64,000 nucleotides of DNA from Octopus bimaculoides (taxonomy: Eukaryota). The stretch lies in assembly GCF_001194135.2 (NCBI RefSeq), contig NC_068995.1:14396694-14460693 (forward strand). The letters run 5' to 3'. Positions 14,281 to 62,305 of the stretch are shown here, in pieces. Within the stretch, counting starts at the first letter, position 1. Each line of letters opens with the position of its first letter. The notes under the pieces are model-generated. The model worked only from the letters and a program-made list of their open reading frames with translations. It was not told where the DNA came from and searched no databases. The position numbers were made by a program, and so were the translations under genes.

Positions 14281-14281
14281 A
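14025..14281 (+). repeat. Compound (ACT/ACC/ACA)n trinucleotide microsatellite
   Basis: Pure ACN repeats with a recurring ACCACAACC spacer. Confidence 0.9.
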
Positions 14282-14913: not shown

Positions 14914-14972
14914 CTGAAAAAACAGAATAAATCAGTGTTACATTATTTTATCTTAGAACTACTATACACAGT

Positions 14973-37443: not shown

Positions 37444-37648
37444 ATGGCTTCAGAATGTTTAGACCCCTTGGAAGAATGCATTTCAAAAGCCTTACCAACA
37501 CAGCCTATTTCAGGCGTAAAAACTCTTGCAAAAACCCTGAGGGACATTGGCGTGGAAACTCTTGAGGACCTGCAGTATGTTGAAGCTTCAGATCTTTCAT
37601 CAGTTCTGAAACCAATCCAGATACGCAAACTTCTTCAACAAACCAAAC
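37444..37648 (+). CDS. Fusion gene coding exon 1: SAM-like domain (MASECLDPLEECISKALP...LRDIGVETLEDLQYVEASDLSSVLKPIQIRKLLQQTK)
   Basis: TTTTCAG acceptor at 37427, ATG at 37444, GTAAAT donor at 37649, phase 1. The L..IGVETLEDL.Y....DL...LKPIQ.RKLL pattern is SAM-like. Confidence 0.82.
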
Positions 37649-39940
37649 GTAAATATGTTTATATTGTTTTTAAGCAAATAAGCTCTGTATTCGTGTCATG
37701 TTATTGTTGTTTTTTGTTTAGAAAACTTATGATCAAAAGCATTCCAACTATGATGAACCTATCTCTTATTTTAGTATTGAAGCATTGTATATAAGTTGGG
37801 TCCTTGTTGCTGTGTGGTGGCTTAACCATTTAACATTCAGATTACTTTGTCAAATGTAATCCTTATTTATTCATACGGTTTTGAATTTAGCATACATTGT
37901 CTTGAAGTTATGAGATTTCAATGATGTGATTGTATAATTTTAGAATGACATTGTAAGGTAGGTGTGAGAGGCCTGATTTGGTCAGTTTGAACATAAAACA
38001 GGTAAAATATTTGGGCCTGATATGGCCAGTTTAAATGCTAAATGGTAAAGTGCCTCAGTGACTCTGAGAGCTATGTCAGAGGAACACAAGCTTCTGATTG
38101 AGCCTTCCATGCTGGACATGTCGAAGGATAGGGGCCAAACTAATATAGACTACCTTTTCCCCAGAGGTAAAAATGGGTTTGCTTAAGGCCAACACCCCTA
38201 CCTAAAGAAACACAAAGTCACAGAAATATCAAATGACAGTTCAAACCCAGCAAGATCTGGGAGAAGAATCTTGTTTCTTTCAGTAATCAGTGGATTCAGT
38301 GCTTTTGATAAAGCAGGGATCCAGCTGGAGAGAAGCAGAAAAGACAGCCTAGAGGTAAAACCGTTGGAGAGAAAGTCATTGATGGCAGTGGAAGGCTTAA
38401 AGCTAAAGCTAATGGGTGTGGGTTCAATCCATGCGTTTGTTGAAACAATACATAACAAAACAAACTCTAATTCTAGTGGAATAAATAAGTGACATCACAA
38501 GTAGAAAAACAACTTGAATGAGAGAATGTCCTTGGAATGGACAAAGAAATGAGAACAGTCTGCCAGTGGATTTTATAAAGGATTTTGTTCAAAATTCTGC
38601 AAATATTACCAAACTGGGCAAGCATCTGAAGAAGATTGGGGTTTAAAATGGCTGAAACATTGTAACTATAACAACCAAATTGAAGATACCAGTCTCAATA
38701 TTTCAATCATTGTCCTCATAATTTAATGTCCACTTTTCGATGCTTGCATGGGTCAGATGAAGTTTGCTGAGGCAAATTTTCTTTAACTAGATGCCCTTCC
38801 AGTCATCAAGCATCACTTGTTTCTAAGCAAAGAAATATTTCCCTTTGACTAGTCATGTTTGTCACAGAAGTCTGGAAACAAACAACCTCTCTTGCATCAT
38901 GATGATATTCATTTACAACCATCATGTGATATATAGACAAGGGTACACACACACACACATGCATATATTTACTACAAGCTGCTTTCAGTTTCATCTGCCA
39001 AATCCATTCACATAATCCAGGGCTACAGTGGGATTGAATCCAATTATGTCCATATATATATATATATTTGTGTTTCATAAAAGTGTGTCAGTTAATATTT
39101 TCTATCATTAAACCTTTCATGACTATATATATTTGCAATGAAATTCACAGCCTAATTTGGAAAATAATCTTGAAATTTGGAAGAATTTAGTAAACATATC
39201 TTTTTCATGAAGCTGATGTTTCATGTAATATGACTTAAAAAAATTATACTTATATAATAATAGTTTCACATTTTGGCACAAGGCCAGCAAATTCAGGGAA
39301 GGGGTAAGTCAGTTACATCACCCCCAGTGCTCAACTGGTATTTATTTTATTGACCCCGTAAAGATGAAAGGCAAAGTCAACCTTGGTAGAATTTGAACTC
39401 AGAATGTGAAGACAGACAAAATGTTGCTCAGTATTTTGTCTCGTGTGCTAATGATTCTGCCAGCTCACTGCCTTATATATAGTATTAAGATGAAAAGATT
39501 TAATTTAATTTAAGAATAAACATTTTAAAATTAGAGAAACAGAAGCCTTCTTGGGTGGTCTCAGATGAGTATCAAATGAATTAATATAATTAGAGGCAGT
39601 AAGGTGGAAAGCTGGTAGAATCATTATTACACGGGGCAAAATGCTTAGTGGTATTTCATCTGTTTTTTCATTCTGAGTTCAAATTTTGTGCAGGTCAACT
39701 TTGCCTTTCATCCTTTTGGGGTCGATAAAATAAGTACAAATTGAGCACAGGGGTCGATGTAATCGCCTTACCCCCACCCAGAATTGATGGCCTTGTGCCA
39801 AAATTTAAACCCAATGTAATTAGAGGCAATTTTAGGAGTGGGGGTAGTCTCAGGTGAGTTTGTATGAGAAGAATTAATGTAAATTAATATTTTGTATCCT
39901 TCATCATACAACTAATATCTGACCTTTTATTTTCTTTTAG

Positions 39941-41784
39941 TTGACTTGAACCAAACACCAACTACTCTGTACTCTTTACCTGGTCAAATACAGAATATGA
40001 TATCAAAGATTGGAGCACCTTTCCAGAATAACAACTTACAACAACCTGTGATAGGAAACCTACATAGTTCATTGCCAACTTCAGGAGTTTGTGTTCAACT
40101 TCCCCTACCTAAAATGACCACGTCAAATGTATCAAAACAAGCTATTGTAGAAAACTCACACAACTCCATCATGTATCCACATAATAACACTTCACCTCTT
40201 CTCTCTCTCAGTATGTCTGGCTCATCTCCTACCAATCAGTCCAGTCCTCAGCTGTCTAATGTAACTCATTATCAGAACCGCAACATACCACAGTACAGTA
40301 ATATGAACAATGTTATTCTGCCATCGACTCAGGTTGTTGAAGTGGCCCCAAACCTCCCTGCAGGTAATAATTCTGTGAAAGATATTTCTTCTGGTGTCAA
40401 CAGAGTAAGGGTAAGGAGTCAGTCGAAACGGGACAAACTTTCTCTGATGGCATCATCGCTTGAAAGAGATGATAACAGTTCTAAAGGCATCAGTCCTAGC
40501 TTGTCTTCTCTCACTCGTCTATGTTCAGTTTATGGCGGAGACAGAAAAGAAGTAGTTGAGATATCACCACAGCCTACAATCGATAATGCTGGATGGAATA
40601 CGGAAAACACTGAACCAAAATTGTCTGCAGCTGATCCTATTATTGTTAGTGATGATAGCAACTGTTCAACTACATCAGAGACTTTGAATTCTAAAAGTTT
40701 TGACAAGATGTCAGACAACAGTCTGATGACCCACACATCTGAATTATTACCTCTAGCAAATATAAACAATGATAAACAGCAGCAGCAACAACAACCCATG
40801 GATGTGTTTTCAGTTAATTCACCTCTTGGATTATATCCTGACAACAATTCCAATATGTTTGCTGATGAAAATTCAGAATGGGTCCAAAATTTTCAGATCC
40901 CCATTGATAAAATGCCTCCAGCCCTTATTCACGCTTTGAAGAACAAACAACGCCCAGAATCAAACCTTCGTCGAGAGATGATTCGTGTTGTTGTTGCAGA
41001 GGCAATAAAATTCTGTGCGAGACCAAACCGAAGACAGTTGTTTTTCATTGCACATAAAATGGTGAACGAATACCCTGAATCCTTGATGGACGATGCACTA
41101 AATTCCAATGGTAGACAAACTGGTTTTGACGCCATTTTGAAACAGTTGCAATCTCGTGTTGAAAATATCAATCGGTTTGACCGAGGACAGTTCCTTTACC
41201 AAAAGAAGTTAATGTCTTGGACTAAGACTCAGCAAAAATCTGATGCTGGCAATCAGAAATCAAGTAAGTTATTGAATAACTATGGCTGCATTAATTGGCA
41301 GCCACTAAAATTACCCGCAAACGAAACAAAATGGAGCCTGAGAATGAAACAGGATTTACTACGGAGCATCTACAACACAAAGTGGGATGTTGAATTTGTG
41401 GAAAAAGACATGATAACTACTTTCTTTTTCCAGAGAAAAGACATCAATAATGGTGCTTCCATCACCACATTACACAAAGACTGGCCTTTTCTCTTTGAAG
41501 AAATTGGGCTAATGGTTCATTTCAAAGAACTGACCACAATCGACATGAAAAGTGTTATGAGTGACTTTCTCAACAATAGTAAAGTGGAAACAATAATTAA
41601 TGTAATGAAATCACTTTTTTTAATGACTAACATAACCGATATAGAACAGATTCTCCAAACAGCTGCCAACTACAAGAAATGTGAGAAACAAAACTCTGAG
41701 AATGATATCAATGTTGCATTAATGATGCAACTTATAATGGTATATCTCGGTGAAGATATACAACATCTATTTCCTCTTGTACCA
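39941..41784 (+). CDS. Fusion gene coding exon 2 (1844 nt): S/N/P/Q-rich linker then SAMD3-like domain (FQIPIDKMP...GCINWQP...FQRKDIN...WPFLF...HFKELT)
   Basis: The only long ORF in the window. TTTTAG acceptor in phase 1 matches exon 1, and a GTTAGT donor follows in phase 0. The motifs resemble the widespread SAMD3-like uncharacterised protein family (recalled, not searched). Confidence 0.9.
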
Positions 41785-42194
41785 GTTAGTATTGTATTTT
41801 TATTCTATTCCTGTTGTTCTTTTATTCTTTTATTGGTGTCAGTCATTGGACTGTGACTATGCTGTGGCATCATCTTCAAAGGTTTTTAATTCATTATATC
41901 AACCACCCCTTCCAATACCAGTTAGGTAATATATTTTATTGTTCTGTACTGTTATTGTTCTGTACTGTTACAGAACTTAAAGTTGGTTGTAAGGGTTTAC
42001 AATACAGTGTGTTGTTGTTGGTGTTTAGCTTTAAGACAATCCTGATTGAGCAGACCCATATATGAATGTTTATATGTACAGGGCAGAAAGAATGGACGTT
42101 TTTGAAATATCTATTACTCAGCCCCAGGGAAAGAGACATATGTTTGACAGGTACCATTTGGTCCATGGTGTCTTTACATTTTTTTTCTTTTCAG

Positions 42195-42750
42195 GTGAAG
42201 CTATGGTGCTGTGGATGATAGAGAATTGTGTGTTTGCCTATGACAGTTACATGAAGAATGATGAGTGTCAGAGCAGTTCAGCGTGAGTTTCAGCACCACT
42301 TCAATATTCACCAAAACCAGGCTGTTCCCACCTATAACACAATCCTACATTTGGTGAATGCATTTCGTACATGAGGCACACTAATGAATAGGAGACTGGT
42401 GGGGGTGCCACAAATGGTACGAACCCTGGAAAATGTGGAATGTGTCAGACAAGCTTTGATACAGAGTCCGAATCACTCTGCTTGGAGACATTCCAATAAA
42501 CTTCACATTGATAATTGATCAGTAAGGCGTATTTTGCATGAGGACCTGAATTTCTACCCATACAAATTGGTCATTGGGTAACAGTTGAAACCATGGGGCT
42601 ATGCACAGTGGCTTAACTTCGCATGTCAGATGGATGCAAATTTAGAGACAAATGACAACCCCTTTTTGTTAATGACTGATGAAGCTTATTTTCATCTCAG
42701 TGGCATGGTGAATCAACAGAGCTGTCATTATTGGGCTCCTGAAAATCCAA
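42195..42750 (+). mobile_element. Decayed Tc1/mariner transposase (rosa/DD41D-like)
   Basis: Across stops it reads VQREFQHHF..P.YNTI...VNAFRT.G...R..ENVECVRQA...SP.HS..R...SVRRILHEDL.FYPYK...TDEAYFHLSG.VNQQSCHYWAPENP. Confidence 0.8.
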
Positions 42751-43027
42751 GCAGAAGTAACAGAGTGACTCAAGGTTTGAGAGTTTTGTGCACTGACACT
42801 TAAAGTACCAAGGCATGAAACTCTTGGACCTTGAATTAATAATCTATACATATATATTTGTCCGATCCATGTCAGTGTGGAAAATGGATATTAAATGATG
42901 ACGATGATATCTACATATGTTTGCATGTGTGTGTGCAAAAATATGCACACACACACACACATATATTAATATATATATTATTCATATTGTGTTTATTTAT
43001 CTTTTCCTTCTTTGTTCTCTTACATAG

Positions 43028-43094
43028 GTGAATTATACTGTAACCGACTTAGAATCCTCCAACATTCCCGAAACTCCATGTCTCATTGCCTGCG
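43028..43094 (+). CDS. Fusion gene coding exon 3 (VNYTVTDLESSNIPETPCLIAC)
   Basis: TAG/GTATGT junctions, phase 0/1. Has the P.TPCLI..G motif of the SAMD3-like C-terminal region. Confidence 0.85.
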
Positions 43095-43863
43095 GTATGT
43101 ATGTTCTTACATATTTATAATTAAAATTATATTAATCATGTATTTTTTTATATGATGTCTTTTAACTATCCATGAGTATTTTTTTTGTTATTATTCCTTG
43201 GTTTTCTTTAACTGCATTAGTTTGTTTGTTATATATCTACTGTTCATTCATATAAACACTTATGTTTGGTCTGTGTGTGTGTATATATATATGTGCACAT
43301 CTATATGCATTTGTGTGTCTGTATGCACATGTATGCTTGAATGATTAATATATATATATATATATATATATGCACATGTGTGGTTGTTCAGTCAAAATGT
43401 TTACTTCTCAACCACAAGGTTTTAGGTCCAATCCCATAGCACAAAACCTTCAGCAAGTGTCCTTTACTATGGCCTCAGACCAACGAAAGCCTTGACAGTG
43501 TGTGTGTGTCTCTCTCTCTCTCTATATATATATAATGTGGGCGTGTATGTTTTGTATCTCCTTGTTTAAACATCATGTGACAGTTGTAATTGATTGTCAG
43601 TGTCACACAAGCAATGTCATTCATTTCCAATATTCTACAAAAACATGTCTAGTTATGGGGGAAATATTGCCTTGCCTAGAAACAGATGAGGGTTGGTGAC
43701 AGGAAGAGCATCTAACTGTGGAAAATCAGCCTCAATGACGACAATGACAACAACGATTAACAATGATTTTAGAGTTGAATATTTTACTTTATTACATGTT
43801 TATCATATGTGTTATTTGTTTACTTTTTAGTTTATTTATTGTTTGTTTGTTTTTCAATTTTAG

Positions 43864-44032
43864 GTGATTCATTGTTGAATTCCTGTAAGTTTCTGCTTTG
43901 TGTTGATGGTACTGTTGTCAATGAACAGATCACTAGTTTCGTAACTGGTCTCTGTATGATGTTCGCATCTTACTACTGCTTCAACATCTGCTACAATCAA
44001 GAGGCACCTTCAACACTGGAATTTGTTCAAAG
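43864..44032 (+). CDS. Fusion gene coding exon 4 (GDSLLNSCKFLLCVDG...FASYYCFNICYNQEAPSTLEFVQR)
   Basis: TAG/GTTTGT junctions, phase 1/2. Contains the family hallmark F..YY.FN..Y...A..TLEF.QR. Confidence 0.9.
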
Positions 44033-45427: not shown

Positions 45428-45554
45428 GTGTTTGTTTGATATTAATCCTATGAAAGGCTCCAAATTTGATCACCAGAAATTCAATAACAAACATTTTGTT
45501 GTTCATCCTAAGATCAATACACTCTTGAAATCTTTGATTGATTTAGGCTTTCAG
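45428..45554 (+). CDS. Fusion gene coding exon 5 (CLFDINPMKGSKFDHQKFNNKHFVVHPKINTLLKSLIDLGFQ)
   Basis: TAG/GTAAGA junctions, phase 2/0. Has the C...INP.KGSK....V.P.V..LL..L.DF motif and ends in a strong donor rather than a stop. Confidence 0.88.
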
Positions 45555-46083
45555 GTAAGACTATTTGTTTGTCACCTGTCTTTTCTTGTTTCTTTTTTCA
45601 GTGTATCTGTGTGTGTATGAATGTATGTAACTATGTATATATGAGTGTGTGTGTGTGTCCCTGTGTCGTATGTGATGGTTGTAAACGAACATCCCCATCA
45701 TACAACTAATGTTATTCATTTCTAATCTTCCATGAAAAACATGTCTGGCCACAGGAAAATATTACCTTGTTTGGAAGCAGGTGAGGCTTGGTAACAAGGG
45801 CATCTGGTTGTAGAAAATCTCCCTCACCAAATTCCGTCTGACCCATCAAGTATGAAAAAGTGGACATTAAATGATCATGATCTACATTATATATATGTAT
45901 ATATATAATATTTATATCAATATAAGGAACCTGATGTAGACTCTGGCCTTGCCTGTTCCTGTCGAGCCATCTAATTCATGCCAGCATGGAAAACAGGTTT
46001 CCGTTTTCCATGCTGTCATGGGTTAGACAGCTCAACAGGAACTGGCAAGGCCAGGATCTACACCAGGTTCCTTACAATAATAC

Positions 46084-46159
<76 letters not shown>

Positions 46160-46811
46160 TATATATATATTTATAAAAAAGAAGTTTGAAAACGCCAATA
46201 TATAAAAGATGAATTTTAATTTATAATTTTGTCAGATATTTTTAACATGTTTCGGTTCTTGAAAAAACGAACCTTATCAAAAATACATATTTAAAAAAAT
46301 GAAATTAAATGAAAAGTTCATAATTGTTCCTTACTGGTGTCAACAGTCCACGTGGGAGCATTTTTTGTTGGTTGTTGTAGTAGTAGTGACCGTGTTGGTA
46401 ATGGTAAATGGCAGTGACCTTATACATATATATCATTTAATGTCCACTTTTTCATGCTTGATGGGTCAGACGGAATTTGTTGAGGGAAATTTTCTAACAC
46501 CAGGTCATTTTGCCTTGTGTAGTGGGCACATTATATTTTGGCACCAGCACTAGAGAAGTCATTATGTCATCTGCAAGACTAAAGATTTGTTTCTCTTCTA
46601 TATTAGTGCCATGTAAAAAGGTAGCCTGTACACTTTGTAAGACAGTTGGCATTGGGAAGGGCATCCAGCTGTAGAAACCAAGCCAAAGCAAACTATGGAA
46701 CTTGGTGCTGCCCCTGGCCTTGCCAGTTCAGTTCCTGTCAAGCCGTCCAACCCATGCCAGCATAGAAAATGGACGTTTAATATTAATGATGACGCACATT
46801 GGTCACCATTT

Positions 46812-46982
46812 AAATAGAGGTACCGATGTATCTACGTAACGATATAGAGGGGAGGTAATCTAGTTTTACCAAAACTAGTGACTTCCCATAGCCCTAACCT
46901 TAAAACATTAACAGTAGTTTTGGTAAAACTAGATTACCTCCCCTTCATATCGCTACGTAGATTCATCGGGACCTCTGTATTT
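46812..46982. repeat. Hairpin MITE with ~65-bp arms
   Basis: GAGGTACCGATGTATCTACGTA...GGGAGGTAATCTAGTTTTACCAAAACTA pairs with TAGTTTTGGTAAAACTAGATTACCTCCC...TACGTAGATTCATCGGGACCTC. The loop contains CCCTAACC. Confidence 0.8.
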
Positions 46983-47510
46983 AAGTAGTGTTGATGATTG
47001 TTTTTGTTTGTTTAATAACCATTTTATGAAGTACATTAGGTGCATTTTAATTGGGTACCAGCACATCTGAAGCCGCCTTGTCGTCTATAGAACTACAGAA
47101 TCTTCTCTTTTCTCTGTTGTTTCTCTTCGTTCAATGCAAATGTAACGAAGAGGGTGAGTAGAATAGGCAGTGATTATCAAGTGTGTGGAATAAGTGAGAG
47201 CGTGAGTATGAGTGGGGAAATAGTGATAGAAGCAAAGAGGAAGGTAAAGCGGAGGAAGTAGTGAAAGAGAGAGACAATAAAAATTACGTTGGTTTCTTTC
47301 AGGGAGATTGACTAGAGAAAGTGCATGAATTGTTGCGATTGTAGGAGAGGATGCGGAGTGAATCAGTGAGAGTGACATGGGAATAGAAGAGAAAGTGTAT
47401 GGGTGGTGTTAGGAAAGACTGGATGTAGATAAATCTGATGTCGTCCTTCATTAATCAGGTGTCATGATAAATGATGTTGATGGACGGTATTGGATATGGA
47501 CAGAACGGTA

Positions 47511-47963
47511 GACTATATGTAATCTGAACCTCCCCCCCGCCTTATTTATTAATTTTTTTTTACGGAATCCCACGTTTTAGGCTATGGAGATTCCGATTCT
47601 GAAAAAAAATTGTTTGAAAAATTTCAATTACCCCACCACCACCACCAAGCAGGCTATTTACATGCTAGAAATAACAGCCAAATCTCACAAAACTAGTGTT
47701 AGGTTTAGGGTTAGGGTTAGGGTTTGAGTTAGGGTTAGGTTTACCCTGTGGATCTATATAANNNNNNNNNNNNNNNNNNNNNNNNNNNNNNNNNNNNNNN
47801 NNNNNNNNNNNNNNNNNNNNNNNNNNNNNNGAAATCGAAATTTTGAAATTGAGAGTTTTGAAATTTTTTTTTTCAGAATCGTAATCTCCATAGCCTAAAA
47901 CGTGGGATTCCGTAAAAAAAAAAAAAATAAATAAGTGGGGAAAGGTTCAGATTACATATAGTC
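47511..47963. repeat. Inverted-repeat element (~120-bp arms) around TTAGGG-like repeats and an N-gap
   Basis: GACTATATGTAATCTGAACC...TTACGGAATCCCACGTTTTAGGCTATGGAGATT mirrors 47845-47963. TTAGGG variants lie at 47698-47745. Confidence 0.75.
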
Positions 47964-48072
47964 CATCTGGACCGACAGATCATATGTCGTATCTTGTTAC
48001 AAGGGCGATATGTTACGGGTGAATATGAAAAAGGTGGATGAAAAATGAAGACTTTAAATATAATGAGCTAAA

Positions 48073-48165
48073 TGGCGAAGGTAAAGAATACACACACCCG
48101 GTGTTTAGGTTTAGGGCTAAGGTTACGCCGAAAACGGGTGGTGTGCGTATTCTTTACCTCCGCCA
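48073..48165. repeat. 93-bp hairpin with a TTAGG(G)-like loop
   Basis: TGGCGAAGGTAAAGAATACACACACCCG pairs with CGGGTGGTGTGCGTATTCTTTACCTCCGCCA. The loop includes TTTAGGTTTAGGG. Confidence 0.7.
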
Positions 48166-49985
48166 GATGAATATAATGATGATAGATATAAAGGAAGCCT
48201 AGACTGAAAATATATAAATACTTAACTGGAATGTAATGGGTTAGAAACCATTCTATATAATAAATTTATGATTGTACCTTCAAATTCATATATTACAGGA
48301 CGTTGTATTTTCTCTAGGTTCACGAAACAAGTTAGGTTACTTTAAATGAAATATATTGGTTGAACATAATTACCTCCCCTTTTGTACGTTCTTTCTGAAG
48401 AATAATTTTTAACCCATAAAATGCTGCAATTTGCACTTACATAGCATGGACTGCTGAGCACATTTTATGAAAATGAGACTACTATTCACACATAAATAAC
48501 AAAAAATAGCTAAAATATTGGATCTTTTCCTTTTGGCCGGCACATTGAAAAAATAATTTTTTGTTACTAAACACTTTCAAATTTCATATACTGGTAGAAT
48601 GTGCCATTTAAAACATCATTTACTCTTGGCGTTTTTAAGAAAAAAATTTTATTTTCGAAGTTATTTCGTGTTAAAGTTGTCGTATTTCGGTAATTTCAGC
48701 CAATCAATTACGTCTATTGAGGTGAAAACAATTACTGCTGTGGTTTGTCAACTAGATGTTCTGGCGGTGTAAATTTACTTTGTCACTGATATTTCTGATA
48801 TATTTACATTTGAGATACACGTGTATATAGTTTAATCAATTCAGTTATTAGTTATTTAAAAAAAAATTTCAGTCTATTTTGTTTGTGGAAGTATTTTCAT
48901 TTTGTTTTAGCATTTTCGAATTTGCCAATTTTAGGGTCTTTTCCCATGAATAAAATTACTGCCGTTGTTTGTCACCAACAACTATCGGCGGTATATATTT
49001 CGTTTGTCACTGTTATTTATGACATCGTTTGTGCGTTTCTACTGGTTTTAGCTTTGGGGTTTTAGGGTTTTAGAGTTAGGGTTTTAGGGTCAGCGTTAGA
49101 GTTTTAGGGAAAAAGCTATCCTAAAGCGACTCAAGTTTTTTGTCATTATGGTATTTGTACATTCTCCCTACAAAGGATGTCCATGTGTATGTGTGTGTAG
49201 TACGTATACATTTCTACAGTTTTCAACCGATTTTCACCAAACTTTGTACACACATTACTTATGTGCCAAGGATGGTCATACACTATAACATTTTGCCCAG
49301 ATCTTCTGCTTAAAGTGAGAGACCGTGACAAACAGTGTTTTACAACAAGGCTGCATAATAATCTGTTCTATTATAGACACAAGGCTTGAAGTTTGGGAGA
49401 GGGGACTATTAGATTACTTTGACCCTACTGCTTAACTGCCACTCATCTTATCAACCCTGAAAGGTTGAAAGTCAAAGTCAACCTTGGTGGAGTTTGAACT
49501 CAGAATGAAAAGACAAATGAAATGCCGCTAAACATTTTGTTTGCATGTTAACAATTCTGCCAGATCGCCACCTTCAACTTGATTAAAAAGAGTAATTAAC
49601 TAATCTCCCTCCCCACACTCTATAATTATTTCTAGTTAACTTTTTAATTCTCCTAACATTGGATATAATAAGATTAAAAATAAAAATCCAATATATGCTC
49701 CAGAAGCAGTATTAGATTAAGATAGCCCTCTATGTATCATACTTAATGTAAATACATTGTGAAAGGAAAGTTTACTGTGGTATTCATCTGGAGATATATC
49801 TCATGGATTTGTGTTATAATGTGCCTTGAAACATAACCTGTCTATAAGAGATATTATCTCTGGACAAATACTGCAGTAAATTGCCTTTCATGATGTTTTT
49901 ACATTAAGAATGATACACAGATAGCTATTTAAACTTAACACACACACACATTGATAAATCAATTTACTTACATTTCTTAATTTAG

Positions 49986-50179
49986 GTGTCTCCAGAACTC
50001 AGTGGCTGTGTATCGAACAGGAAATCAAGAACTCCTGATTCCTCAGATATCTCAAGATGGTCTTTGGAAACGACAAACAATTCCAATGATTCTGATCTTC
50101 CAGCTTTATCTTCTCTTTGTCCAACAACAACAGCAGCAGACAACACTCAGAATTTCCCATCTTTAACAGATAAACCAAG
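49986..50179 (+). CDS. Fusion gene coding exon 6 (VSPELSGCVSNRKSRTPDSS...PSLTDKP)
   Basis: TTTAG/GTATTT junctions, phase 0/2, open S/T-rich frame. Support comes from phase consistency only. Confidence 0.65.
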
Positions 50180-53255: not shown

Positions 53256-53885
53256 ATGGTCAACGAGAAGAAGAAAATTTCAAATGATGTTAGAAGATTA
53301 ATCGTGTCAAATTATAATGAAGGTCGTACTGTAACTGAAATCGCTTCCAACTTAGTTATTCCTCGGACCAGTGTTCAAACTGTTGTTCAAATATATAAAC
53401 AGGAAGGACGTATCGAGCAAAAAAATCGAGGATGTTGTCAAAGAACTAAAATTTCGGAAGAAATGAAAAACTTCATGCGAACCTCAGTAGACAAAAAACG
53501 TCATATATCTTTAAGAATGCTGTCTAATATGGTTTTTGAACATTTTAATGTGAGTTTGTCAAAAACAAGCGTTGATAAGTGCCTTAAAAGTCTCAATTAC
53601 ACATTCAAAAGGTCTAATGGGATTTCTGAAAGAGCTTTAACTTCAGAAAACTTTACACAGAGAAATAATTATACAAGAAAACGTCAAAATCATTTGACAG
53701 AAAAGTGTTGGAGTAAAAATGCTCTTATTGATGAAGTTGGGTTCAACACTTACGCGAGATCTAAAAACGGTGGACGAAAAACTGGACAGTCTCCTGTGCA
53801 GAGAGTACATAGGTTGTGTACCCGAAATACAAGAGTATGTTGCACCACAAACAAAAATCAAGAAATAAAGAAAAGGTTACTCTGA
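53256..53885 (+). mobile_element. IS630/Tc1-like transposase N-terminal part (paired HTH plus first catalytic Asp), truncated
   Basis: 209-codon ORF: R.LIV..Y.EG.T..EIA..L.IPRTSV..VV..YK.EG.I, SL..L...V...FNV.LS.TSV...LK.L.YT.KR, IDEVGFN. No later D/E residues are visible. Confidence 0.8.
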
Positions 53886-55241
53886 TGTTATTTATTTTAA
53901 TCTTTGTCTAATTGTATAAATTGTCCAGTATGTAGTTTTTCATCTAATGAACTAAATATAGTATATATAGTTACAGTAATGTAAGATGTGGCAATTTTTA
54001 TTATGCAAAACCTGTAATTTTTTACTTTTTTTAAAACTTTTTTACTTGTTTCAGTCATTAGACTGTGGCCATGCTGGGGCACTGCTCAGAAGAATTTTTA
54101 GTTGAATGAATCAACTCCAGTACTTTTATTTTAAGCTTGCTACATATTTCATCAAACTCTTTTGCTGAACTGGCGAGTTATAGGGACATAAACAGACCAA
54201 CACCAGATGTCAAGCAGTGGTTGACTGAGATACAAACACACACACACACACATATGATGGGTTTCTTTTCAGTTTCTATCTGCCAAATCCACTCACAAAG
54301 CTTTGGTGAGCCCGAGGCTATGGTAAAAGACACTTGCCCAAGGTGCCACACAGTGAGACTGAACCTGGAACCATGTGGTTGGGAAGCAAGCTTCTCAACC
54401 ACATAGTCACACTTGTGTTACACTAAACTTTTTCATGTTTATGTTTTTCTTTTTCTCAATTAATTCTGTGACAAGTAATCACCGATAATAATGTTTGTTT
54501 ATAAAAATGAATTTGCTCCATTCTATGTTGACAATGATGAATTTGAAGTTGACATCGATGAGAACAAGATTAAAACTGTCTAATTTGGTGGTGATGGTGG
54601 TGGGGTCTTTATATATGTATGTGTGTATGGTGGAGGCGCAGTGGCCCAGTGGTTAGGGCAGTGGACTCGCAGTCATAGGATCGCGGTTTCGATTCCCAGA
54701 CCGGGCGTTGTGAGTGTTTATTGAGCGAAAACACCTAAAGCTCCACGAGGCTCCGGCAGGGGATGGTGGCAAACCCTGCTGTACTCTTTCGCCACAACTT
54801 TCTCTCACTCTTACTTCCTGTTTTTGTTGTGCCTGTAATTCAAAGGGTCAACCTTGTCACACTGTGTCACGCTGAATATCCCCGAGAACTACGTTAAGGG
54901 TACACGTGTCTGTGGAGTGCTCAGCCACTTGCACGTTAATTTCATGAGCAGGCTGTTCCGTTTATCGGATCAACTGGAACCCTCGACGTTGTAAGCGACG
55001 GAGTGCCATCACATGTGTATATTAATATATATGTATGTATACACACAAACACACATATAGATATATGTTGGGGTATTTGTATATTCATGTATATGAATAT
55101 AGATATGTATATGTACATATGTGTGTGTGTGTGTGTACATATATATATATGTATTTGTATATGTGTATGCATGTAGGAATTGTAATTGTTTAAAGAAGCT
55201 TCTTTCTGAATGTGTTTCTATGTTTCCATTATTTTCTTAAG

Positions 55242-55478
55242 TGATGAAAACGAACTTGTAACAAATCCTTCAATTAGCATCGAACGTAATGAAATAACCA
55301 GTCAAGGCTTATCAGAAGACCAACAGCAGCAACAACAACAGCATCAACAACAGCAACAGCAAGAACACCAACAGCAACAACTTACCTCTGCCAATATCAG
55401 CAATATGCCAGCATCCAGTGAAGCACCTCTTGTAATTTCGGTGGAAGAAGTTCAGGATTTTGAACTCCCAGATCAAAA
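55242..55478 (+). CDS. Fusion gene coding exon 7 with polyQ tract (DENELVTNPS...QQQQQQQHQQQQQQEHQQQQ...DFELPDQ)
   Basis: TTCTTAAG/GTAAAG junctions, phase 2/2. The Gln run mixes CAA and CAG codons. Confidence 0.7.
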
Positions 55479-55645
55479 GTAAAGTATTGTTGCTAACAAT
55501 TTTAATTTCTGTTTCTCTTGTTTTAACCAGAATCTTCTGTCCAGATGACTTTATCTCATCACCATCTCTGGTATTTGAAGATTTGCAGATACCAGGCACC
55601 AATATCTCTGAAGATATCTGAAGATTTGCAGTGTAGCATTATGTC

Positions 55646-55895
55646 CAAACTCCAGTATCATTGGTGTGTTGAAGACATGGAGTGGAGTGTGATATCAGAC
55701 TCCAGTATCATTGGTGTGTTGAAGATATTAAGTGGAGTGTGATATCAAATTTTAGTATCTCTGGTGTGTTGAAGATATGGAGTGGAGTGTGATATCAGAT
55801 TTTAGTATCTCTGGTGTGTTGAAGATATTAAGTGGAGTCTGACATCAGACTCCAATATCTCTGGTGTGTAGAAGGTATTGGGTGGAGTGTTATAT
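55646..55895 (+). repeat. 50-bp minisatellite, 5 copies
   Basis: Unit A(A/G)A(CTCC/TTTT)AGTATC..TGGTGTGTTGAAGA..T..AGTGGAGTGTGATATC. Confidence 0.9.
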
Positions 55896-56641
55896 CATCT
55901 GTTTGATGAAATGCTAAGTTACAAGGATGTAAACAAACCAACACTGATAGTCAAGTGGCGGTGGTGGTGGGGCAAGCACAAGTACAACCAGACATACATG
56001 CACACATGCATATATACAATAGGCTTCCACACAGTTTCATCTGCCAAAATCACTCACCAGGCATTGGTCAGTCTGGGGCTGTTGTAGAATACACTTACCC
56101 AAGGTGCTGAGCAGTGGGACTGAACCCAAAAACTACATGTTTGCAATGCAGGTTTCTTAATCACACAACTATACTTACACCTATGTTGATATATACATAT
56201 TATATATTCCCTCCTCTCTTAGGAGGTACAAGCACTTATACATGTACATATACGACCAAAACTTCCACCTACCAAATTCACTCATATGGCTTCGGTTGGC
56301 CCGAGGCTGTAGCAGAAGACACTTGCCCAAGGTGCCACACAGTGGGACTGAACCCGAAAACCATGTGGCCGGGAAGTAAGCTTCCTAACCACACAGCCAT
56401 GTTTGCAACGTATTGATTTCAAATTTTGGCACAAGGCCAGCAGTTTCAATGGAGGTGGGTAAGTTGATTACATCAACCCCACTACTCAACTGGTACTTAT
56501 TTTATCGACCCCGAAAGGATGAAAGGCAAAGTCAACCCCGGCAGAATTTGAACTCAGAATGTAAAGATAGATGAAATGCCACTAAGCATTTTGCCTGGTA
56601 TGCTAGTGATTCTGCCAGCTCACCGTCTCATATTATATATA

Positions 56642-56808
56642 CAGTTGTGGCCAAAAGTTTGGAACATCTTTTTTTAAAATTAAAATTGTTATGCCCAAGT
56701 ACAATTCAATCCAAATATATACAACATAGAGAGATACTTACCTAATAACTGATCCAGTGGCTCAATTCTAATTTTCACACCTATGTTCCAAACTTTTGGC
56801 CACGACTG
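56642..56808. mobile_element. Tc1-like MITE, 167 bp
   Basis: TA|CAGTTGTGGCCAAAAGTTTGGAACAT at the left and ATGTTCCAAACTTTTGGCCACGACTG|TA at the right. 26-bp TIRs with TA TSD. Confidence 0.85.
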
Positions 56809-56864
56809 TAGATATTATATATTTCTGTTGCTCTTATTTTGATTAATAATTATCTTAGTTTCAG

Positions 56865-56936
56865 GTACAATATTATGAATACTACAAATGAGCTGCAAGA
56901 AAACCCAACCAAGTTTGTTCCGAAAATCAAAACAAG
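56865..56936 (+). CDS. Fusion gene coding exon 8 (YNIMNTTNELQENPTKFVPKIKT)
   Basis: TTTCAG/GTGAGT strong junctions, 72 nt, phase 2/2. Confidence 0.7.
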
Positions 56937-57837
56937 GTGAGTAACTTCCATTGCTTTTTTTTCATCTTCACATTTTCTGTTGTTGCTGTCAAAAAAAAAC
57001 AAAACAAAAAGAACAACAACAAAAAAACATTGAGTGGTATTTATTATGGATTAAGAAGGGCATCCAGCCGTAGAAACCCTGCCACAACAGACAGTTAGTG
57101 TCTGCACAGCTCCCTGCTAGCCAGCTCCATGTCAAACTGTCCAACCCATACCAGCATGGAAAGTGGATGTTAAACAATGGTGATGATGATGATGACAGTG
57201 CTTTAAAAATGAAGCCAACATCATTGACTATGGTCATTGTTCTGCCACTAGGTCCAGTCCTTGTGTGGTGGCTTGCATGCCTCAACGACCCTAAGAGAAT
57301 TTCAGAATGTAAGTAGTCGTCTGAGTGACTAGGTGTGACTCATAGATCTGTTGAACAGGATATCCTATGCTTCTACTAGATGGAGGGCCACAACTTTACA
57401 CCCCACCATTCAGATATGAATAATGTAGAGTCCTGTTTTCCAGTTTGGACATATTATGTTCTCTCCACTGTTCAGTCTATATCAATGGCTAGCCCACATT
57501 ACCCTGTAAGGAGCATAGAGCAGGTTTCCTGTTTTTTCTGGCATATATATTCCTTCCTGGATAGGATGCTGCTCCATCGCAGGATGACTCATTTTTCACC
57601 AGCTGAGTGGACTGGAGCAATGTGTAATGAAGTGTTTTGCTCAAGAACACAATGCATTGCTCGGTCCAGGAATTGAAACCACAATCTTACGATCATGAGT
57701 GCAACACCCTAACCACTTAGCCATGTACCTCCACAGTTTATATCTATATATCTGTATATTTTGGTTGTTGCCACAGTAAAGATGGATATGGTAGGCTTAA
57801 TCAGAGCTCTTCATCTGCACACATATTGTTGATCATA

Positions 57838-58045
57838 GGCGGCGATCTAGCAGAAACGTTAGCACGCCAGGCAAAATGCTTAGCAGTATTTCATCTGCCG
57901 TTACGTTCTGAGTTCAAATTCCGCCAAGGTCGACTTTGCCTTTCATCCTTTTGAGGTCGATAAATTAAGTACCAGTAACGCACTGGGGTTGATGTAATCC
58001 ACTTAATCCCTTTGTCTGTCCTTGTTTGTCCCCTCTACGTTTAGC
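57838..58045 (+). mobile_element. tRNA-derived SINE family A; more than 15 copies in both orientations (e.g. 1900-2740, 3370-3595, 7265-7425, 17945-18365, 21830-22750, 39290-39805, 49375-49575, 56425-56625, 58865-59087, 62918-63410)
   Basis: Shared GGCGGCGAGCTGGCAGAAACGTTAGCAC head, GAGTTCAAATTCC B box and GCCTTTCATCCTTT.GGGGTCGATAAA core. Confidence 0.85.
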
Positions 58046-59974
58046 CCTTTGTGGGCAATAAAAAAAAAAAAAAAGAATGTTTGTTATTGTTCTGGTTTAG
58101 CCCGAAGTAGGCTTGATTTAACTGACCTATGATCAAAGACATTCCAGCCATGACCATTTTGTTTTCCCTTTTTTTTTTCATATTTCATCTAGGACTTCAT
58201 TATCCTGCATGTCTTTTCTTTTAATGATGATAGAGTGTGACTTGAGAGAATTTGGTTACTATTTCTAGTAGATTGAGCAACCTCATAGGGACTTTATAAG
58301 GTCCTGGTGAACTGAGTCTGTAACCTGACTTTAATTCCTGGTTGTTACCATTTCATTTAAATTTTACTCCTATTTCTTCCTAAGTCTGTTATGCGCCCTA
58401 GGACTCATAAGACCAGACCCAGTTGCCATGGCATATAATTAACTGAGATTACAACATTCACCCCAGAAGGGTTAATTTCCCATATATTGCTCGAACTCAC
58501 ATTACTGAGTAGGCCAGAGCAATGTGAAACGATTTACTCAAGAACAAAATGCATTACCCAGTCTGTGAATCAAAAGTACATCTTCCAGTTGTGAGAGTAA
58601 CACCCTCACTGTATGCCTTCCTTATTCCTACTGCCTTAGAAAAGACAAAACTTTAAAATCATGTAGAGTATATAAGCACAGTCATGACTGTGTGGTAAGA
58701 AGCTTGCTTCCCAACCATATGGTTCAGGTTTCAGTCCCACTGTGTGGCATCTTGGGCAAGTGTCTTCTACTATAACCTCAGACTGACCAAAGTCATGTGA
58801 GTGAATTGGGTAGACATAAACTGAAAGAAGCCCATCATGTATATATATGTGTGTTATTTCTTTACTACCCACAAGGGGCTACACACAGAGGGGACAAACA
58901 AGGACAGACAAACAGATTAAGTCAATTATATCGACCCCAGTGCGTAACTGGTACTTATTTAATCGACCCCGAAAGGATGAAAGGCAAAGTCAACCTCAGT
59001 GGAATTTGAACTCAGAATGTAGCGGCAGACGAAATACCGCTAAGCATTTCGCCCGGTGTGCTAACGTTTCTACCAGCTCGCCGCCTTAAATGTATATATA
59101 TATGTCATGTATATGTGTGTGTGTGTGTGTATGTATATATCTATGTGTGTCTTTGTGTCTGTGTTTGTCCCCACTCATGATTGCTTGACAACTCGTGCTG
59201 GTGTGTTTACATCCCTGTAACTTAGTGGTTCAGCATAAGAGACTGATAGAATAAGGTCTGGGCTTAAAAAGTGAGTCCTGTGGTTGATTGTTCAACTAAA
59301 ACCTTTCAAGGCAGTGCTCCAGCATGGCCACAATCATATGACTGGAACGAGTAAAAGAGTGAAAGAATATCTTCATATCTAACATAACATGGATGCCTTG
59401 TCAGAACAGTGAATACTTCGTTATCTTTTGGTATTAATACTGCTTCTGTAGCTAATAATCAATTATGTAGAGTATATTTAGTGAAGGCATATGGCTTAGT
59501 GGGTAGGCACATTCGGCTCACAATCATAAGGGCATGAGTTCAATTCCTGGTGGCATGTTGTGTCCTTGAGCAAGACACTTTATTTCACATTGCTTCAGTC
59601 CATCCAATAGGCAAAAATCAGTTGTACCTGTATTTCAAAGGGCCAGCCTTGTCCCACTCTGATTCACGCTGAATCTCTTTGAGAACTATGTTAAGGGTAC
59701 ACATGTCTGTGGAGTGCTCAGCCACTTGCACGTTAATTTCATGAGCAAACTGTTCTGTTGATCGGATCAACTGGAACACTCGTTATCATAAGTAATTGAG
59801 TCCCAGTTAGTTATATTAAGTATTGCACTCTGCTTCCCCCAACTGCTCTTAATTCTTAGATTTTTTAAAACATTGTAATCACAATGAATCTTCAGGCATC
59901 TTGTTGACAAATTCATAGCTGGGTGAAAACTGAATTTGACTTTATATATATTATTTTTTATTTGATTTTTAAAG

Positions 59975-60205
59975 GTTAAAGCATTGCCGAAGTGTTCGTG
60001 GACATGGCACTAATAAAAAGCCCAAAGAATGGATGAGAGAATATTGGCGCATTAAAAAGAGGGAATCTCGAGCTCGTCAAGATTATTGGAGAAAGCGTGT
60101 ATTACATGAGTCCATTCCAGGACAAGCAAGCACCACTGTTCCGACTGGAGAACCCATTTGTAACCAGGCTTTTGATATCAATACAAATATACCTTGTGAT
60201 GATGG
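59975..60205 (+). CDS. Fusion gene coding exon 9 with basic helix (LKHCRSVRGHGTNKKPKEWMREYWRIKKRESRARQDYWRKRVLHES...)
   Basis: T-rich AAG acceptor, GTAAGT donor, phase 2/2, 231 nt open. Confidence 0.8.
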
Positions 60206-60288
60206 GTAAGTAAGAAAAGTTACTTTTCACCTGTATAGTTCTGTATTAATTTAAACAAAGGTATTAATGATGAATGTTCCATTTACAG

Positions 60289-60505
60289 TCAACCAAACAA
60301 GAAAAATGTTCAGTTACATTCGCCACCAGCCTTGGTTCAACCACAGGCTTCTGTGGTGCCAACACCATCTCCAGTTCCAAAGCTACCAACCTACAAATTC
60401 CAGATGCAGCATCATCAGAGTTGTGTAATGACCCAACTTTATCAGATGTGGAAATCAAGGTTATTTTGCAATGCAGCAATTAGTAATGGAACTCATACAA
60501 TCTTA
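60289..60505 (+). CDS. Fusion gene coding exon 10: Pro-rich linker and BTB N-terminus (YKFQMQHHQSCVMTQLYQMWKSRLFCNAAISNGTHTIL)
   Basis: TACAG/GTAAGT junctions, phase 2/0. H...V...L..MW..R.FC(D/N) is the typical BTB/POZ entry motif. Confidence 0.85.
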
Positions 60506-61098
60506 GTAAGTTGTCAATTAGTTTTTAATTCTTATTTATGGGCCAAATAGAGTGATATAAATATCTTTCTCTATCATTTATTATCTTTTCTTCGTTACTG
60601 TCTTTGCTTATCTATTTGTGTCTTCTGTTGTATGTATTTTTCTCCATTTTCCTCATAACTCATCGTTATTTACTGTTTGGTCTAGAGACCTTATCATGTC
60701 TTGTTATTTGCAGTTGTTTATCATGTCTGCTCAGTTATACAGTAGTAGCCTATGGTGCTGACACTGCTGTGCTGACAAATTGTAGTGATATTTGGCCAAT
60801 AGATGATGATGGGGTTGAGCATATTTCATGTTCATCATGTGTTTTTTTTCCTGTCTTTCCATATGCTCCTTTGTCATATTCCTGTGACACATTTAATTTT
60901 CTGAATCTAGCAGCACATGAACAATATGTTATATGTATATATATATCCTCACACACATACATGTGTGTGTGTGTGCATACTTGTATACATATATGTTTAT
61001 TTTGCTGAATAGAAATAATGGTGCGATACCTTTCAGATAACACACCCTGCCTTCTCAAATAAACAATATGTTTCATGAGATAATGAGGACCTCTACGT

Positions 61099-61390
61099 GG
61101 TGCTTTTTATGTGCTACCAGCACAGGAGCCAGTCAGGTGGGCCTGGCATCGATCACATTCAGATAGTGCTTTTTATGTGCCACCGGCACAGGAACCAGTC
61201 AAGGGGCCCTGACATTGGCCACATTCAGATGGTTCTTATTACATACCACCGGCATGAGAGCCAATCAGGTGGCCCTGGCATCGATCACGTTCAGATAGTG
61301 CTTTTTACATGCCACTGGTACAGGAGCCAGTCAGAGGGCACTGGCATTGGCCACGTTTGGATGGTGCTTCTTATGTGCCACCGGGGCACT
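61099..61390 (+). repeat. 66-bp tandem repeat, ~4.4 copies, derived from the RTE-tail internal unit
   Basis: Unit GTGCTTTTTA.GTGCCACC.GCACAGGAGCCAGTCAG..GG.CCTGGCAT.G..CAC.TTCAGAT. Confidence 0.85.
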
Positions 61391-61546
61391 ACAAAAATGG
61401 TGAAGAATCATTGATATAGAGGATTCTTTATTTTGGTTTGTCTTGTACAGAATTGTGGCTTTATGCCTGTATGAAAAAAGATACAAAAAAAAAAAATCAT
61501 TATTTTCTTTGAAAGTAATTAATATCTCATATAATATCTCTTTCAG

Positions 61547-62305
61547 GTTCATCGAGATCTTCTTATTGCTACTTGTACCAAACTTCTGGAAATTCCAAAT
61601 ACTGATGCACTGAAAGGTGATTACCTACAGTTAACTTTTACCCCTGACATTCAAGAGGAAGCTCTCTGGGCCTTTTGTACCTATATGTACGAAGGAGTCC
61701 TGGTTTTAAATTCAGATATTCTATATAACATGGAGTGCATTGCTAAGATCCTTGGTGTATACAATATCTTGAGCCTTGTGGATCGATATAAACAATGTAC
61801 AATGGAAAACCAATCCAACACACCTTTGAAATCTTCAAATGAAGAACAGATAGATATATATTTTAACTACCAAATAACAAACAGATTTCAGATTGACAAC
61901 GACTGTGATGGAGGACCTAGCCAGCCAGGAATAAAGGTGAAACAAGAAACAGACCCGACTTCCTGTTCTTCGCAAAATACCGTAGCAGAGTCTCAGAATA
62001 ATTTAAACAAATCAGATTCTTTCCTGAACTACGAACATGTTGATAACAAAATGACATTAACGGGACTTCAATATCAGAAGACCATCTGTAATTTGTCACA
62101 AATGATAACGGGTATGATTAGTCACAATCAACCAGACTACAGTACGTCAATTGTGATTGAGGTGGAAGTTGATTCCATCATGTCCAACAGCTGTCCGAAC
62201 ATAAACACTCAATCAAACACTACTCTTTCTCCAGTCAGTTTGACAACAGTTTCTGGGGAACAGCTCCCCCTTGATTTACCACATACACAAATAAAAACTG
62301 AATAA
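61547..62305 (+). CDS. Fusion gene coding exon 11: BTB/POZ core (VHRDLLIATCTKLL...ALWAFCTYMYEGVLVL...IAKILGVYNILSLVDRYKQC) plus low-complexity tail and TAA stop
   Basis: TTTCAG acceptor, phase 0. The VHR..L.A.C, Y.Y.G.L.L and A..L.V..L BTB motifs are present. The stop overlaps AATAAA. Confidence 0.87.
   Translation, partial: VHRDLLIATCTKLLEIPNTDALKGDYLQLTFTPDIQEEALWAFCTYMYEGVLVLNSDILYNMECIAKILGVYNILSLVDRYKQCTMENQSNTPLKSSNEEQIDIYFNYQITNRFQIDNDCDGGPSQPGIKVKQETDPTSCSSQNTVAESQNNLNKSDSFLNYEHVDNKMTLTGLQYQKTICNLSQMITGMISHNQPDYSTSIVIEVEVDSIMSNSCPNINTQSNTTLSPVSLTTVSGEQLPLDLPHTQIKTE

Follow-up and report, generated by a model that had tools for sequence, protein, structure and literature searches.

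In this study we examine a gene on the forward strand of a 64,000-nucleotide (nt) stretch of the Octopus bimaculoides genome (NCBI RefSeq assembly GCF_001194135.2, contig NC_068995.1, positions 14,396,694 to 14,460,693), which we call the window and in whose numbering coordinates are given unless another locus is named. The gene spans 37444-62305 and is RefSeq LOC106873627 (XP_014776561.1 / XP_052829144.1), an "uncharacterized protein" of 1375 amino acids (aa) in O. bimaculoides. We propose, with a probability that we would put at about 0.7, that this single Octopus gene arose through an exon-level fusion between a domesticated transposon gene and a BTB-type regulator of chromatin or transcription. 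The gene model is already public for three Octopus species and we present no new one; what is new is the interpretation, a description of this kind being absent from the literature that we searched.

A sequence-only reading of this stretch had assembled 11 exons into one open frame, and this was reproduced exactly when the chain was rebuilt from the raw window sequence by enumerating stop-free stretches and GT-AG sites. The rebuilt coding sequence (CDS) of 4122 nt encodes 1373 aa followed by a TAA stop, the intron phases are 1,0,1,2,0,2,2,2,2,0, and GT and AG bound 10 of the 10 introns; a stop-free chain of 11 exons is far beyond chance expectation. The exons are as follows, where P0001 is a protein of cod and P0002 and P0003 are two further relatives, all described below.

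37444-37648, forward strand: exon 1, aa 1-69, which holds the start codon and a SAM-like domain and can be aligned to the N-terminal ends of P0001-P0003; 202 of 205 nt the same in O. sinensis.
39941-41784, forward strand: exon 2, aa 69-683, a long, disordered linker rich in serine, threonine, asparagine and glutamine with a short polyglutamine (polyQ) tract, then most of the core in common with the cod P0001 family.
43028-43094, forward strand: exon 3, aa 684-706, the best-scoring phase-compatible candidate; kept in O. sinensis.
43864-44032, forward strand: exon 4, aa 706-762, placed by the chain rebuild, the P0001 alignment and conservation in O. sinensis.
45428-45554, forward strand: exon 5, aa 762-804, which completes the P0001-like module; phase-0 donor CAG/gtaaga, kept in O. 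sinensis.
49986-50179, forward strand: exon 6, aa 805-869, a bridge rich in serine, threonine and asparagine (S/T/N-rich) with no in-frame ATG; 188 of 194 nt the same in O. sinensis, indel-free, both splice sites kept.
55242-55478, forward strand: exon 7, aa 869-948, a polyQ/H tract of species-variable length (27-nt in-frame indel).
56859-56936, forward strand: exon 8, with the RefSeq acceptor at 56859 (56865 in the sequence-only reading).
59975-60205, forward strand: exon 9, aa 972-1049, a strongly basic helix, KKPKEWMREYWRIKKRESRARQDYWRKRV.
60289-60505, forward strand: exon 10, aa 1049-1121, a spacer rich in proline followed by the N-terminal half of the BTB domain.
61547-62305, forward strand: exon 11, aa 1122-1373, the second half of the BTB domain, an S/T/N-rich tail and the TAA stop.

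The rebuilt chain and XP_014776561.1 differ only where exon 7 joins exon 8, by one substitution and by two residues more in the latter; the junction reads ...DQNFRYN... in RefSeq and ...DQKYN... in the chain. At this point two AG acceptors stand in tandem 6 nt apart (cttag/TTTCAG/GTACAA), either of which preserves the frame, with products that differ by 2 aa; the acceptor chosen earlier is thus sound as to frame and lies 6 nt downstream of that used by RefSeq, and the two may be used alternatively. At the 5' end an acceptor (ttttcag/GAATTCCATTGGCATA) is located at 37427-37443, 16 nt 5' of the exon 1 ATG, and the O. vulgaris isoform CAI9733694.1 (P0105) runs from an upstream coding exon through this acceptor, which together point to at least one additional 5' exon. 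Further along, exon 3 encodes the peptide IPETPCLIAC, which aligns with VPPTPCLIVC of cod P0001. Exons 7-9 are phase 2 at entry and at exit and are therefore modular, the basic helix of exon 9 holds 9-10 lysines or arginines per 20 residues, and the BTB domain straddles the exon 10/11 junction. The correct frame of exon 10 reads ...QSCVMTQLYQMWKSRLFCNAAISNGTHTIL, a longer open reading frame (ORF) in another frame not being the coding one, and the tail of exon 11 contains two psi-K-x-E motifs of the SUMO type, VKQE and IKTE. Interspersed repeats, in which the introns are rich, overlap none of the 11 exons; no second copy or paralogue of either half was found elsewhere within the 64-kb window; Rfam and tRNA scans of the whole window gave no matches, nor did Pfam on exons 2-9, its sole borderline match being the SAM-like domain.

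The locus is free of gaps in O. sinensis, where 11 of 11 exons are colinear with those of O. bimaculoides and 10 of 10 donors and 10 of 10 acceptors are kept. The open frame there is 4155 nt long, and the sole coding indel is the 27-nt change in polyQ length; between the two species the exons are approximately 95% identical without frameshifts, while the introns are 85-93% identical with many indels. The ratio of non-synonymous to synonymous substitution (dN/dS), computed by the Nei-Gojobori method for this species pair, is 0.14 for the whole CDS and, by part, 0.10 for the core, 0.23 for the linker, 0.10 for the BTB domain and 0.15 for the tail. The bridging exons 6-8, read in the frame set by exon 5, give 0.15, and the most constrained part is exon 9 (0.02; 12 synonymous changes and 1 non-synonymous change). 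By comparison, a Tc1-like ORF within an intron, used as a control, gives 0.74. As judged by these ratios, the comparison shows purifying selection on every segment of the gene.

The same comparison bears on whether the two halves belong together. Exon 5 ends in a consensus donor and not in a stop in both Octopus species, and reading on past this donor adds 21 unconserved hydrophobic codons before a stop is met. Within exons 6-11 the first in-frame ATG does not occur before late exon 7. In a further octopod, represented by Logan contigs, the exon 11 acceptor, frame and stop are kept with a single indel of 3 nt, and identity is 95% over the BTB part as compared to 82% over the adjoining intron and 78% over the 3' flank. 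On this comparative evidence the chain is a single conserved Octopus protein-coding gene of about 1375 aa, and the earlier proposal of one gene joining a SAM-like domain and a core module of about 430 aa to a C-terminal BTB domain is borne out by splice sites, frame and dN/dS that are all maintained with respect to O. sinensis.

The sequence-only reading described the gene as hidden and its architecture as one that it did not recognize. The gene is not hidden and the architecture is on record, since RefSeq and GenBank have the same model for all three species, O. bimaculoides, O. sinensis and O. vulgaris. The O. sinensis orthologue is LOC115220330 (XP_029646290.1, 1384 aa) and those of O. vulgaris are CAI9733694.1 and CAI9733695.1 (one of 1385 aa and one of 1402 aa); both species have the same order of parts and were annotated separately. 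A UniProt entry of 2015, A0A0L8H0C4 (639 aa), begins with a Met inside exon 4, continues through exons 5, 6 and on to 11, and thus already crosses the exon 5/6 junction (45554 to 49986); exon 6 is accordingly present in the RefSeq, O. sinensis, O. vulgaris and 2015 UniProt models. Another 2015 entry, A0A0L8H0C3, is a BTB-only product whose first exon is a Tc1/Sleeping-Beauty-like helix-turn-helix (HTH) ORF at 53256-53885. The names attached to the orthologue entries are "uncharacterized protein" or "BTB domain-containing protein", and among the cluster members that we saw LOC106873627 has a single RefSeq product. When the C-terminal 569 aa were searched exhaustively, a 1385-aa protein was recovered that matched over 806-1385 and stands in a cluster of five entries. 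Word-indexed protein searches (exon 2; exons 9-11; exons 3-10) returned just five proteins and missed full-length orthologues that are 95-100% identical, so this type of search has poor recall for the gene and its negatives are not to be taken as absence. Literature searches on the LOC and XP identifiers found no paper that names them, and those on SAMD3 with BTB and on SAMD3 with transposase found nothing relevant. As far as the searches made can tell, the combination of the SAM-like domain and core with BTB is confined to Octopus, in line with the lineage-specific origin first suggested.

Turning to the front half, its first 69 residues match Pfam PF22931 (SAM_TNK) at 24.5 bits against a cut-off of 25 (E 2.8e-5), over the second half of the profile only, and the SAM-like call therefore remains borderline. 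The core that follows (aa ~376-804) is 36-39% identical to the 528-aa cod protein P0001 (E 5e-48) over the entire length of that protein past its SAM-like part, and matches of the front half to P0001 and to the two Logan proteins P0002 and P0003 range from E 5e-48 to 2e-18; the source names in the P0001 family are "unnamed" or "uncharacterized". The sequence-only reading called this half "SAMD3-like", a provisional label; the homology shown here is to P0001-P0003. It had also stated that front-half relatives end at the point of the exon 5 donor, and this proved correct. The cod protein finishes ...HEWTFQ-stop in exact alignment with the end of exon 5, ...DLGFQ, and the DNA reads TTC CAG TGA in cod and TTT CAG/GTAAGA in octopus. 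The first intron is of phase 1 and occupies the same position after the SAM-like part in both.

The surroundings of the cod gene, which the earlier reading did not reach, are what suggest an origin for this module. In Arctogadus glacialis a C2H2 zinc-finger plus large ORF (ORF1) precedes the P0001 gene on the same strand, 40 nt away, and the pair is enclosed by terminal inverted repeats (TIRs) of 0.8-0.9 kb at 4798-5622 and 15281-16208 of the cod locus, which are 93-100% complementary and delimit a unit of about 11.4 kb (4798-16208). Copies at 90% identity or more are spread over five chromosomes of Arctogadus and occur in other gadids as well. Cod ORF1 is 44% identical (E 2e-141) to an 882-aa ORF directly upstream of P0002, on a contig that is unrelated to cod and has 27.8% GC, as of a low-GC invertebrate, where ORF1 and P0002 form a unit at 515-5045. 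From its organization the cod unit looks like an unclassified two-ORF DNA transposon. No homologue of ORF1 was found in the octopus window; the octopus core locus is immobile and orthologous, with a colinear counterpart in O. sinensis and a core dN/dS of 0.10, the purifying selection that would be expected of a domesticated copy. By homology, the front half probably derives from a transposon-borne gene. A more specific version, which we regard as possible though on balance doubtful, is that the SAM-like domain and core constitute the accessory (second) gene of a family of two-ORF, long-TIR DNA transposons present in teleosts and a low-GC invertebrate, and that octopus domesticated one copy, converted its stop position to a splice donor and wired it to a BTB regulator.

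The other half of the protein ends in a BTB domain at aa ~1086-1210 of 1373. Its best match in the PDB, when it is searched alone, is NS1-BP (E 6e-4). Approximately 20 cephalopod proteins match aa ~1050-1215 with domain E-values of 1e-31 to 1e-21, and the Pfam profile for BTB (PF00651) is passed by 10 of the 10 cephalopod paralogues tested. A subfamily profile of 12 sequences, with the octopus protein as first row, matches PDB BTB domains across the whole domain at E 3e-25 to 1e-8; the top matches are ZBTB17, BCL6, NACC1 and ZBTB18 (E 3e-25 to 1e-12), and ZBTB5, myoneurin and BACH1 are also matched (to E 1e-10). The AlphaFold2 model of aa 1075-1225 from the subfamily alignment has a mean predicted local distance difference test score (pLDDT) of 84.3 and a predicted template-modelling score (pTM) of 0.79. 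Its predicted strands (10-13, 37-40, 45-48, 74-77 and 98-101) and helices (19-30, 50-56, 84-96, 103-116 and 119-137) make up the core fold with the N-terminal strand/helix extension of long-form dimeric BTBs. With this model Foldseek retrieves BCL6, NS1-BP, ZBTB8A, ZBTB9 and myoneurin at probability 1.0 and template-modelling (TM) scores of 0.75-0.82, at identities to solved structures of just 16-22%, and in both profile and Foldseek searches BTBs of the KLHL type are weaker matches than those of the ZBTB type. Pfam detects no BACK, Kelch or MATH domain, and no zinc fingers in either half of the protein, so that the ZBTB layout (N-terminal BTB, C-terminal C2H2 fingers) is not present; beyond the cephalopods, the nearest relatives are BTB zinc-finger loci of bivalves, which have dozens of isoforms. 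A C-terminal BTB/POZ domain of BCL6/ZBTB type is thereby confirmed by profile and predicted fold. Of the domains proposed earlier, the BTB thus stands, as do the polyQ tract and the basic helix, both plainly present, and the SAM-like domain falls just short of its threshold as described above.

In the cephalopod paralogues the BTB domain, marked by the subfamily motif HQ..VM..L..LWK...CDA.I.NG....VH, is internal or C-terminal and is preceded by THAP, by CENP-B_N with HTH_Tnp_Tc5, by THAP with DDE_3, by DUF3504 (Crypton-type) or by basic-repeat N-termini. Only the BTB is common to them, exons 6-9 being private to this gene, although the basic repeats of one paralogue (P0013) resemble them faintly. 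It has been reported that most Octopus CENPB and THAP proteins carry BTB/POZ (PMC10027918). Judged by these relationships, the BTB of LOC106873627 belongs to a subfamily that is expanded in cephalopods and is routinely found behind transposon-derived N-terminal modules, a point that was missed earlier, as was the TIR-bounded multi-copy element that holds the relatives of the front half. We also note that P0008 (O. bimaculoides LOC106877732) and P0009 (Argonauta hians), both from loci with many isoforms, have a near-identical middle and BTB behind different N-termini, a CENP-B/Tc5 HTH and THAP, respectively. By analogy this suggests alternative 5' modules spliced to common BTB exons, as in lola and mod(mdg4) with the order of parts reversed.

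The introns contain an assembly gap and several transposon sequences, of which two are relevant to the continuity of the gene:

47505-47973, strand not assigned: TIR transposon insertion in intron 5, specific to O. bimaculoides as compared to the empty O. sinensis site; contains the assembly gap.
53256-53885, forward strand: Tc1/Sleeping-Beauty-like transposase HTH remnant in intron 6 (Pfam HTH_SB), a 209-aa ORF that forms the first exon of A0A0L8H0C3.

The gap (47762-47830) falls within intron 5 (45555-49985) and outside the exons, and it is equally present in the chromosome-level assembly CM046615.1 (GCA_001194135.2), which is identical to the window. Inverted repeats of 120 nt and 87.5% identity (47511-47629 and 47847-47963) flank it, and the segment 47505-47973 that holds both is bounded by a GACAGA target-site duplication. 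The O. sinensis intron, which has no gap, lacks this segment, and the sequences on either side of it are contiguous there: 47422-47504 of the window corresponds to 21524-21606 of the O. sinensis locus and 47974-48518 to 21601-22150. Because exons 5 and 6 are spliced to one another in O. sinensis in the absence of any such sequence, the gap holds no exon; it lies inside a transposon whose site is empty in O. sinensis, so no coding sequence is hidden there and the continuity of the frame across it is unaffected. Within the insertion there is an internal telomere-like run of (TTAGGG)n type at ~47700-47750. The Tc1-like ORF of intron 6, with a ratio of observed to expected CpG (CpG o/e) of 1.26, also remains open in O. 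sinensis, differing there by indels that preserve the frame. We considered it as a real alternative first exon and, in view of its near-neutral dN/dS, rejected this; the first exon of A0A0L8H0C3 is probably an annotation artefact and not part of the gene. Elsewhere, intron 2 carries a fragment of a mariner/Tc1-like transposase at 42375-42800 (...HYWAPENP...), and a SINE-like repeat (translation ...CPRCHTVGLNPEPCGWEASF...) recurs in many copies across introns and flanks.

Over 30000-64000 of the window CpG o/e falls from ~0.83 5' of the ATG to ~0.3 over the gene body and returns to ~1 only over young transposon inserts at 47.8-49.0 kb and 52.5-53.9 kb, a profile that fits gene-body methylation from near exon 1. 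The lineage-specific transposon falls in the CpG-rich stretch at ~46-49 kb, which is not as well conserved as the adjoining intron. Because of the young insertions we have treated CpG content as a confounded marker for the question of one gene or two.

On the proposed reading, two parts would have been brought together: a gene for the SAM-like domain and helical core of about 430 aa, whose relatives reside on a TIR-bounded multi-copy DNA element beside a zinc-finger and putative transposase ORF, and the 3' portion of a member of the cephalopod-expanded BTB family. The ancestral stop of the front gene (...FQ-stop) would have given way at the same position to a phase-0 GT donor, which would splice through three low-complexity exons (S/T/N-rich, polyQ) to the basic helix, the BTB and the psi-K-x-E tail. 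The protein might then enter the nucleus by means of the basic helix, which could serve as a nuclear localization signal, contact nucleic acid, or both. The BTB would homodimerize or oligomerize, possibly together with self-association of the SAM-like domain, and would recruit partners in the manner of BTB transcription factors. By analogy with the paralogues, the SAM-like domain and core would presumably occupy the "targeting" slot that is held there by THAP, CENP-B/Tc5 HTH or other transposon-derived modules.

Several observations weigh against this proposal. The exon junctions are known from database gene models and evolutionary signatures, and the annotations may share evidence or methods. 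The BTB domain taken alone scores 14 bits against a Pfam PF00651 cut-off of 20.5 (positions 2-102 of 110), and AlphaFold2 on the 425-aa core, from an alignment of four sequences, returned a pLDDT of 52 and a confident model for no more than the first ~70 residues; Foldseek with this core model found no match below E 3.5. For ORF1, Pfam gives a weak tnp2 (Transposase_21) match (E 0.012) in one copy, and cod ORF1 gives no match; two loci and one multi-copy cluster are the basis on which the front half is traced to a transposon; and the direction of transfer could be the reverse, a transposon having captured a host gene. Lastly, an internal promoter could lie at ~46-49 kb, where CpG depletion lapses and o/e reaches 1.09.

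Such a promoter would suit a different arrangement, in which a SAM-like/core gene ending after exon 5 and a downstream BTB gene are neighbours that prediction pipelines chained through a chance fit of phase, or that are joined by rare read-through. The relatives of the front half are complete in themselves and terminate precisely at the point that matches the end of exon 5, CpG o/e is ~1.0 at 47.8-49.0 kb between the halves, A0A0L8H0C3 supplies a BTB-only model with another first exon, and an ATG at 55210 would be in frame with exon 7 if that region were unspliced. However, the CpG-rich stretch coincides with the lineage-specific transposon and the alternative first exon is near-neutral; the donor of exon 5 is conserved in O. 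sinensis, where no stop takes its place, and the codons beyond it are hydrophobic and unconserved; and exon 6, without an ATG, is nevertheless open and indel-free with its splice sites kept, the low dN/dS of exons 6-8 speaking likewise for translation with exon 5. The junction is crossed, moreover, in RefSeq for two species and two releases, by the O. vulgaris project and in the 2015 set. We consider two genes to be quite improbable. Least probable of all, in our view, is that the locus has several products, with alternative 5' modules such as the transposase HTH of A0A0L8H0C3 placed on common BTB exons and the 1375-aa protein being one isoform among them. Paralogous loci with many RefSeq isoforms would be a precedent, as would the almost identical middle and BTB of P0008 and P0009 behind their different N-termini; the Tc1-like ORF is uninterrupted in O. 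bimaculoides and O. sinensis alike, and exons 7-9 are modular. Against this, that ORF has the dN/dS (0.74) and undepleted CpG of non-functional transposon sequence, and RefSeq has the single product for the gene noted above.

A third alternative accepts the fusion and differs on what the protein does: it might be a Cullin-3 substrate adaptor, that is, a subunit of an E3 ligase whose BTB binds Cul3 and whose SAM-like/core part binds substrates, and not a transcription or chromatin factor. In MATH-BTB proteins the BTB is C-terminal to the substrate-binding module, a layout resembled here, and the BTBs of KLHL3, gigaxonin, KBTBD4 and NS1-BP are significant matches as well. The strongest matches, however, are transcription-factor BTBs (ZBTB17, BCL6, NACC1, ZBTB18, ZBTB5, ZBTB8A, ZBTB9, myoneurin and BACH1), the nearest non-cephalopod relatives are the bivalve zinc-finger loci, the paralogues couple the same BTB with DNA-binding modules, and Pfam finds no BACK or 3-box. 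Basic helices, polyQ tracts and psi-K-x-E motifs are, in addition, typical of nuclear regulators. The sequence-only reading had put forward scaffold, repressor and E3 adaptor as possible roles; the type of BTB, by profile and by predicted fold, favours the transcription-factor reading over a Cullin-3 adaptor, and we hold an adaptor role to be unlikely, if a little less so than two separate genes.

The fused regulator that we propose invites comparison with several known systems. Closest are the cephalopod THAP-BTB, CENP-B/Tc5-HTH-BTB, DDE_3-BTB and DUF3504-BTB proteins (PMC10027918), which have the same BTB subfamily with a variable N-terminal module before it and an S/T-rich tail after it. 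They differ in that the N-terminal module of the present protein is the SAM-like domain with the 430-aa core, in which no DNA-binding domain is recognized, and in that exons 6-9, with the polyQ and basic helix, have no counterpart among them, the faint P0013 similarity aside. The vertebrate and bivalve BTB zinc-finger factors (BCL6, ZBTB17/Miz-1, ZBTB18, myoneurin and bivalve "BCL6-like" loci) resemble it in BTB profile and predicted fold, whereas the octopus protein has no zinc fingers and carries its BTB at the C-terminal and not the N-terminal end. The cod P0001 family (CAL8361427.1, XP_059896493.1 and others) has in common with it the SAM-like N-terminus, the full core, the ...FQ end and the phase-1 intron. 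The cod protein, however, is a stand-alone product of 528 aa with its own stop, multi-copy and inside the 11.4-kb TIR unit beside the zinc-finger/putative transposase ORF, while the octopus window has a single copy with no ORF1 beside it, interrupted by two or three additional introns and enlarged by a linker insert of 300 aa. Finally, host-transposase fusion genes are known to form by exon capture (10.1101/2020.05.07.082677), and they too consist of a transposon-derived module spliced to a host regulatory domain with purifying selection thereafter; in the octopus gene the captured part appears to be the second (accessory) gene of the element and not a transposase DNA-binding domain, and its origin is deduced from homology.

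The finding is of relevance to genome innovation in cephalopods and to transposon domestication, and does not open a long-standing question. It draws attention to an uncharacterized and strongly constrained protein of the octopus lineage, in which a transcription-factor-type BTB is combined with a large module that has mobile-element relatives, and it would extend the reported THAP-BTB and CENPB-BTB pattern of octopus to a non-DNA-binding transposon gene. It also offers an example of fusion through the conversion of a stop position to a splice donor, and a first hint as to the origin of the poorly understood SAM-like and core proteins. If the doubtful accessory-gene version were true, these proteins would be transposon-derived, possibly including vertebrate SAMD3, and the cephalopod BTB family would capture accessory proteins of transposons besides the DNA-binding domains of transposases.

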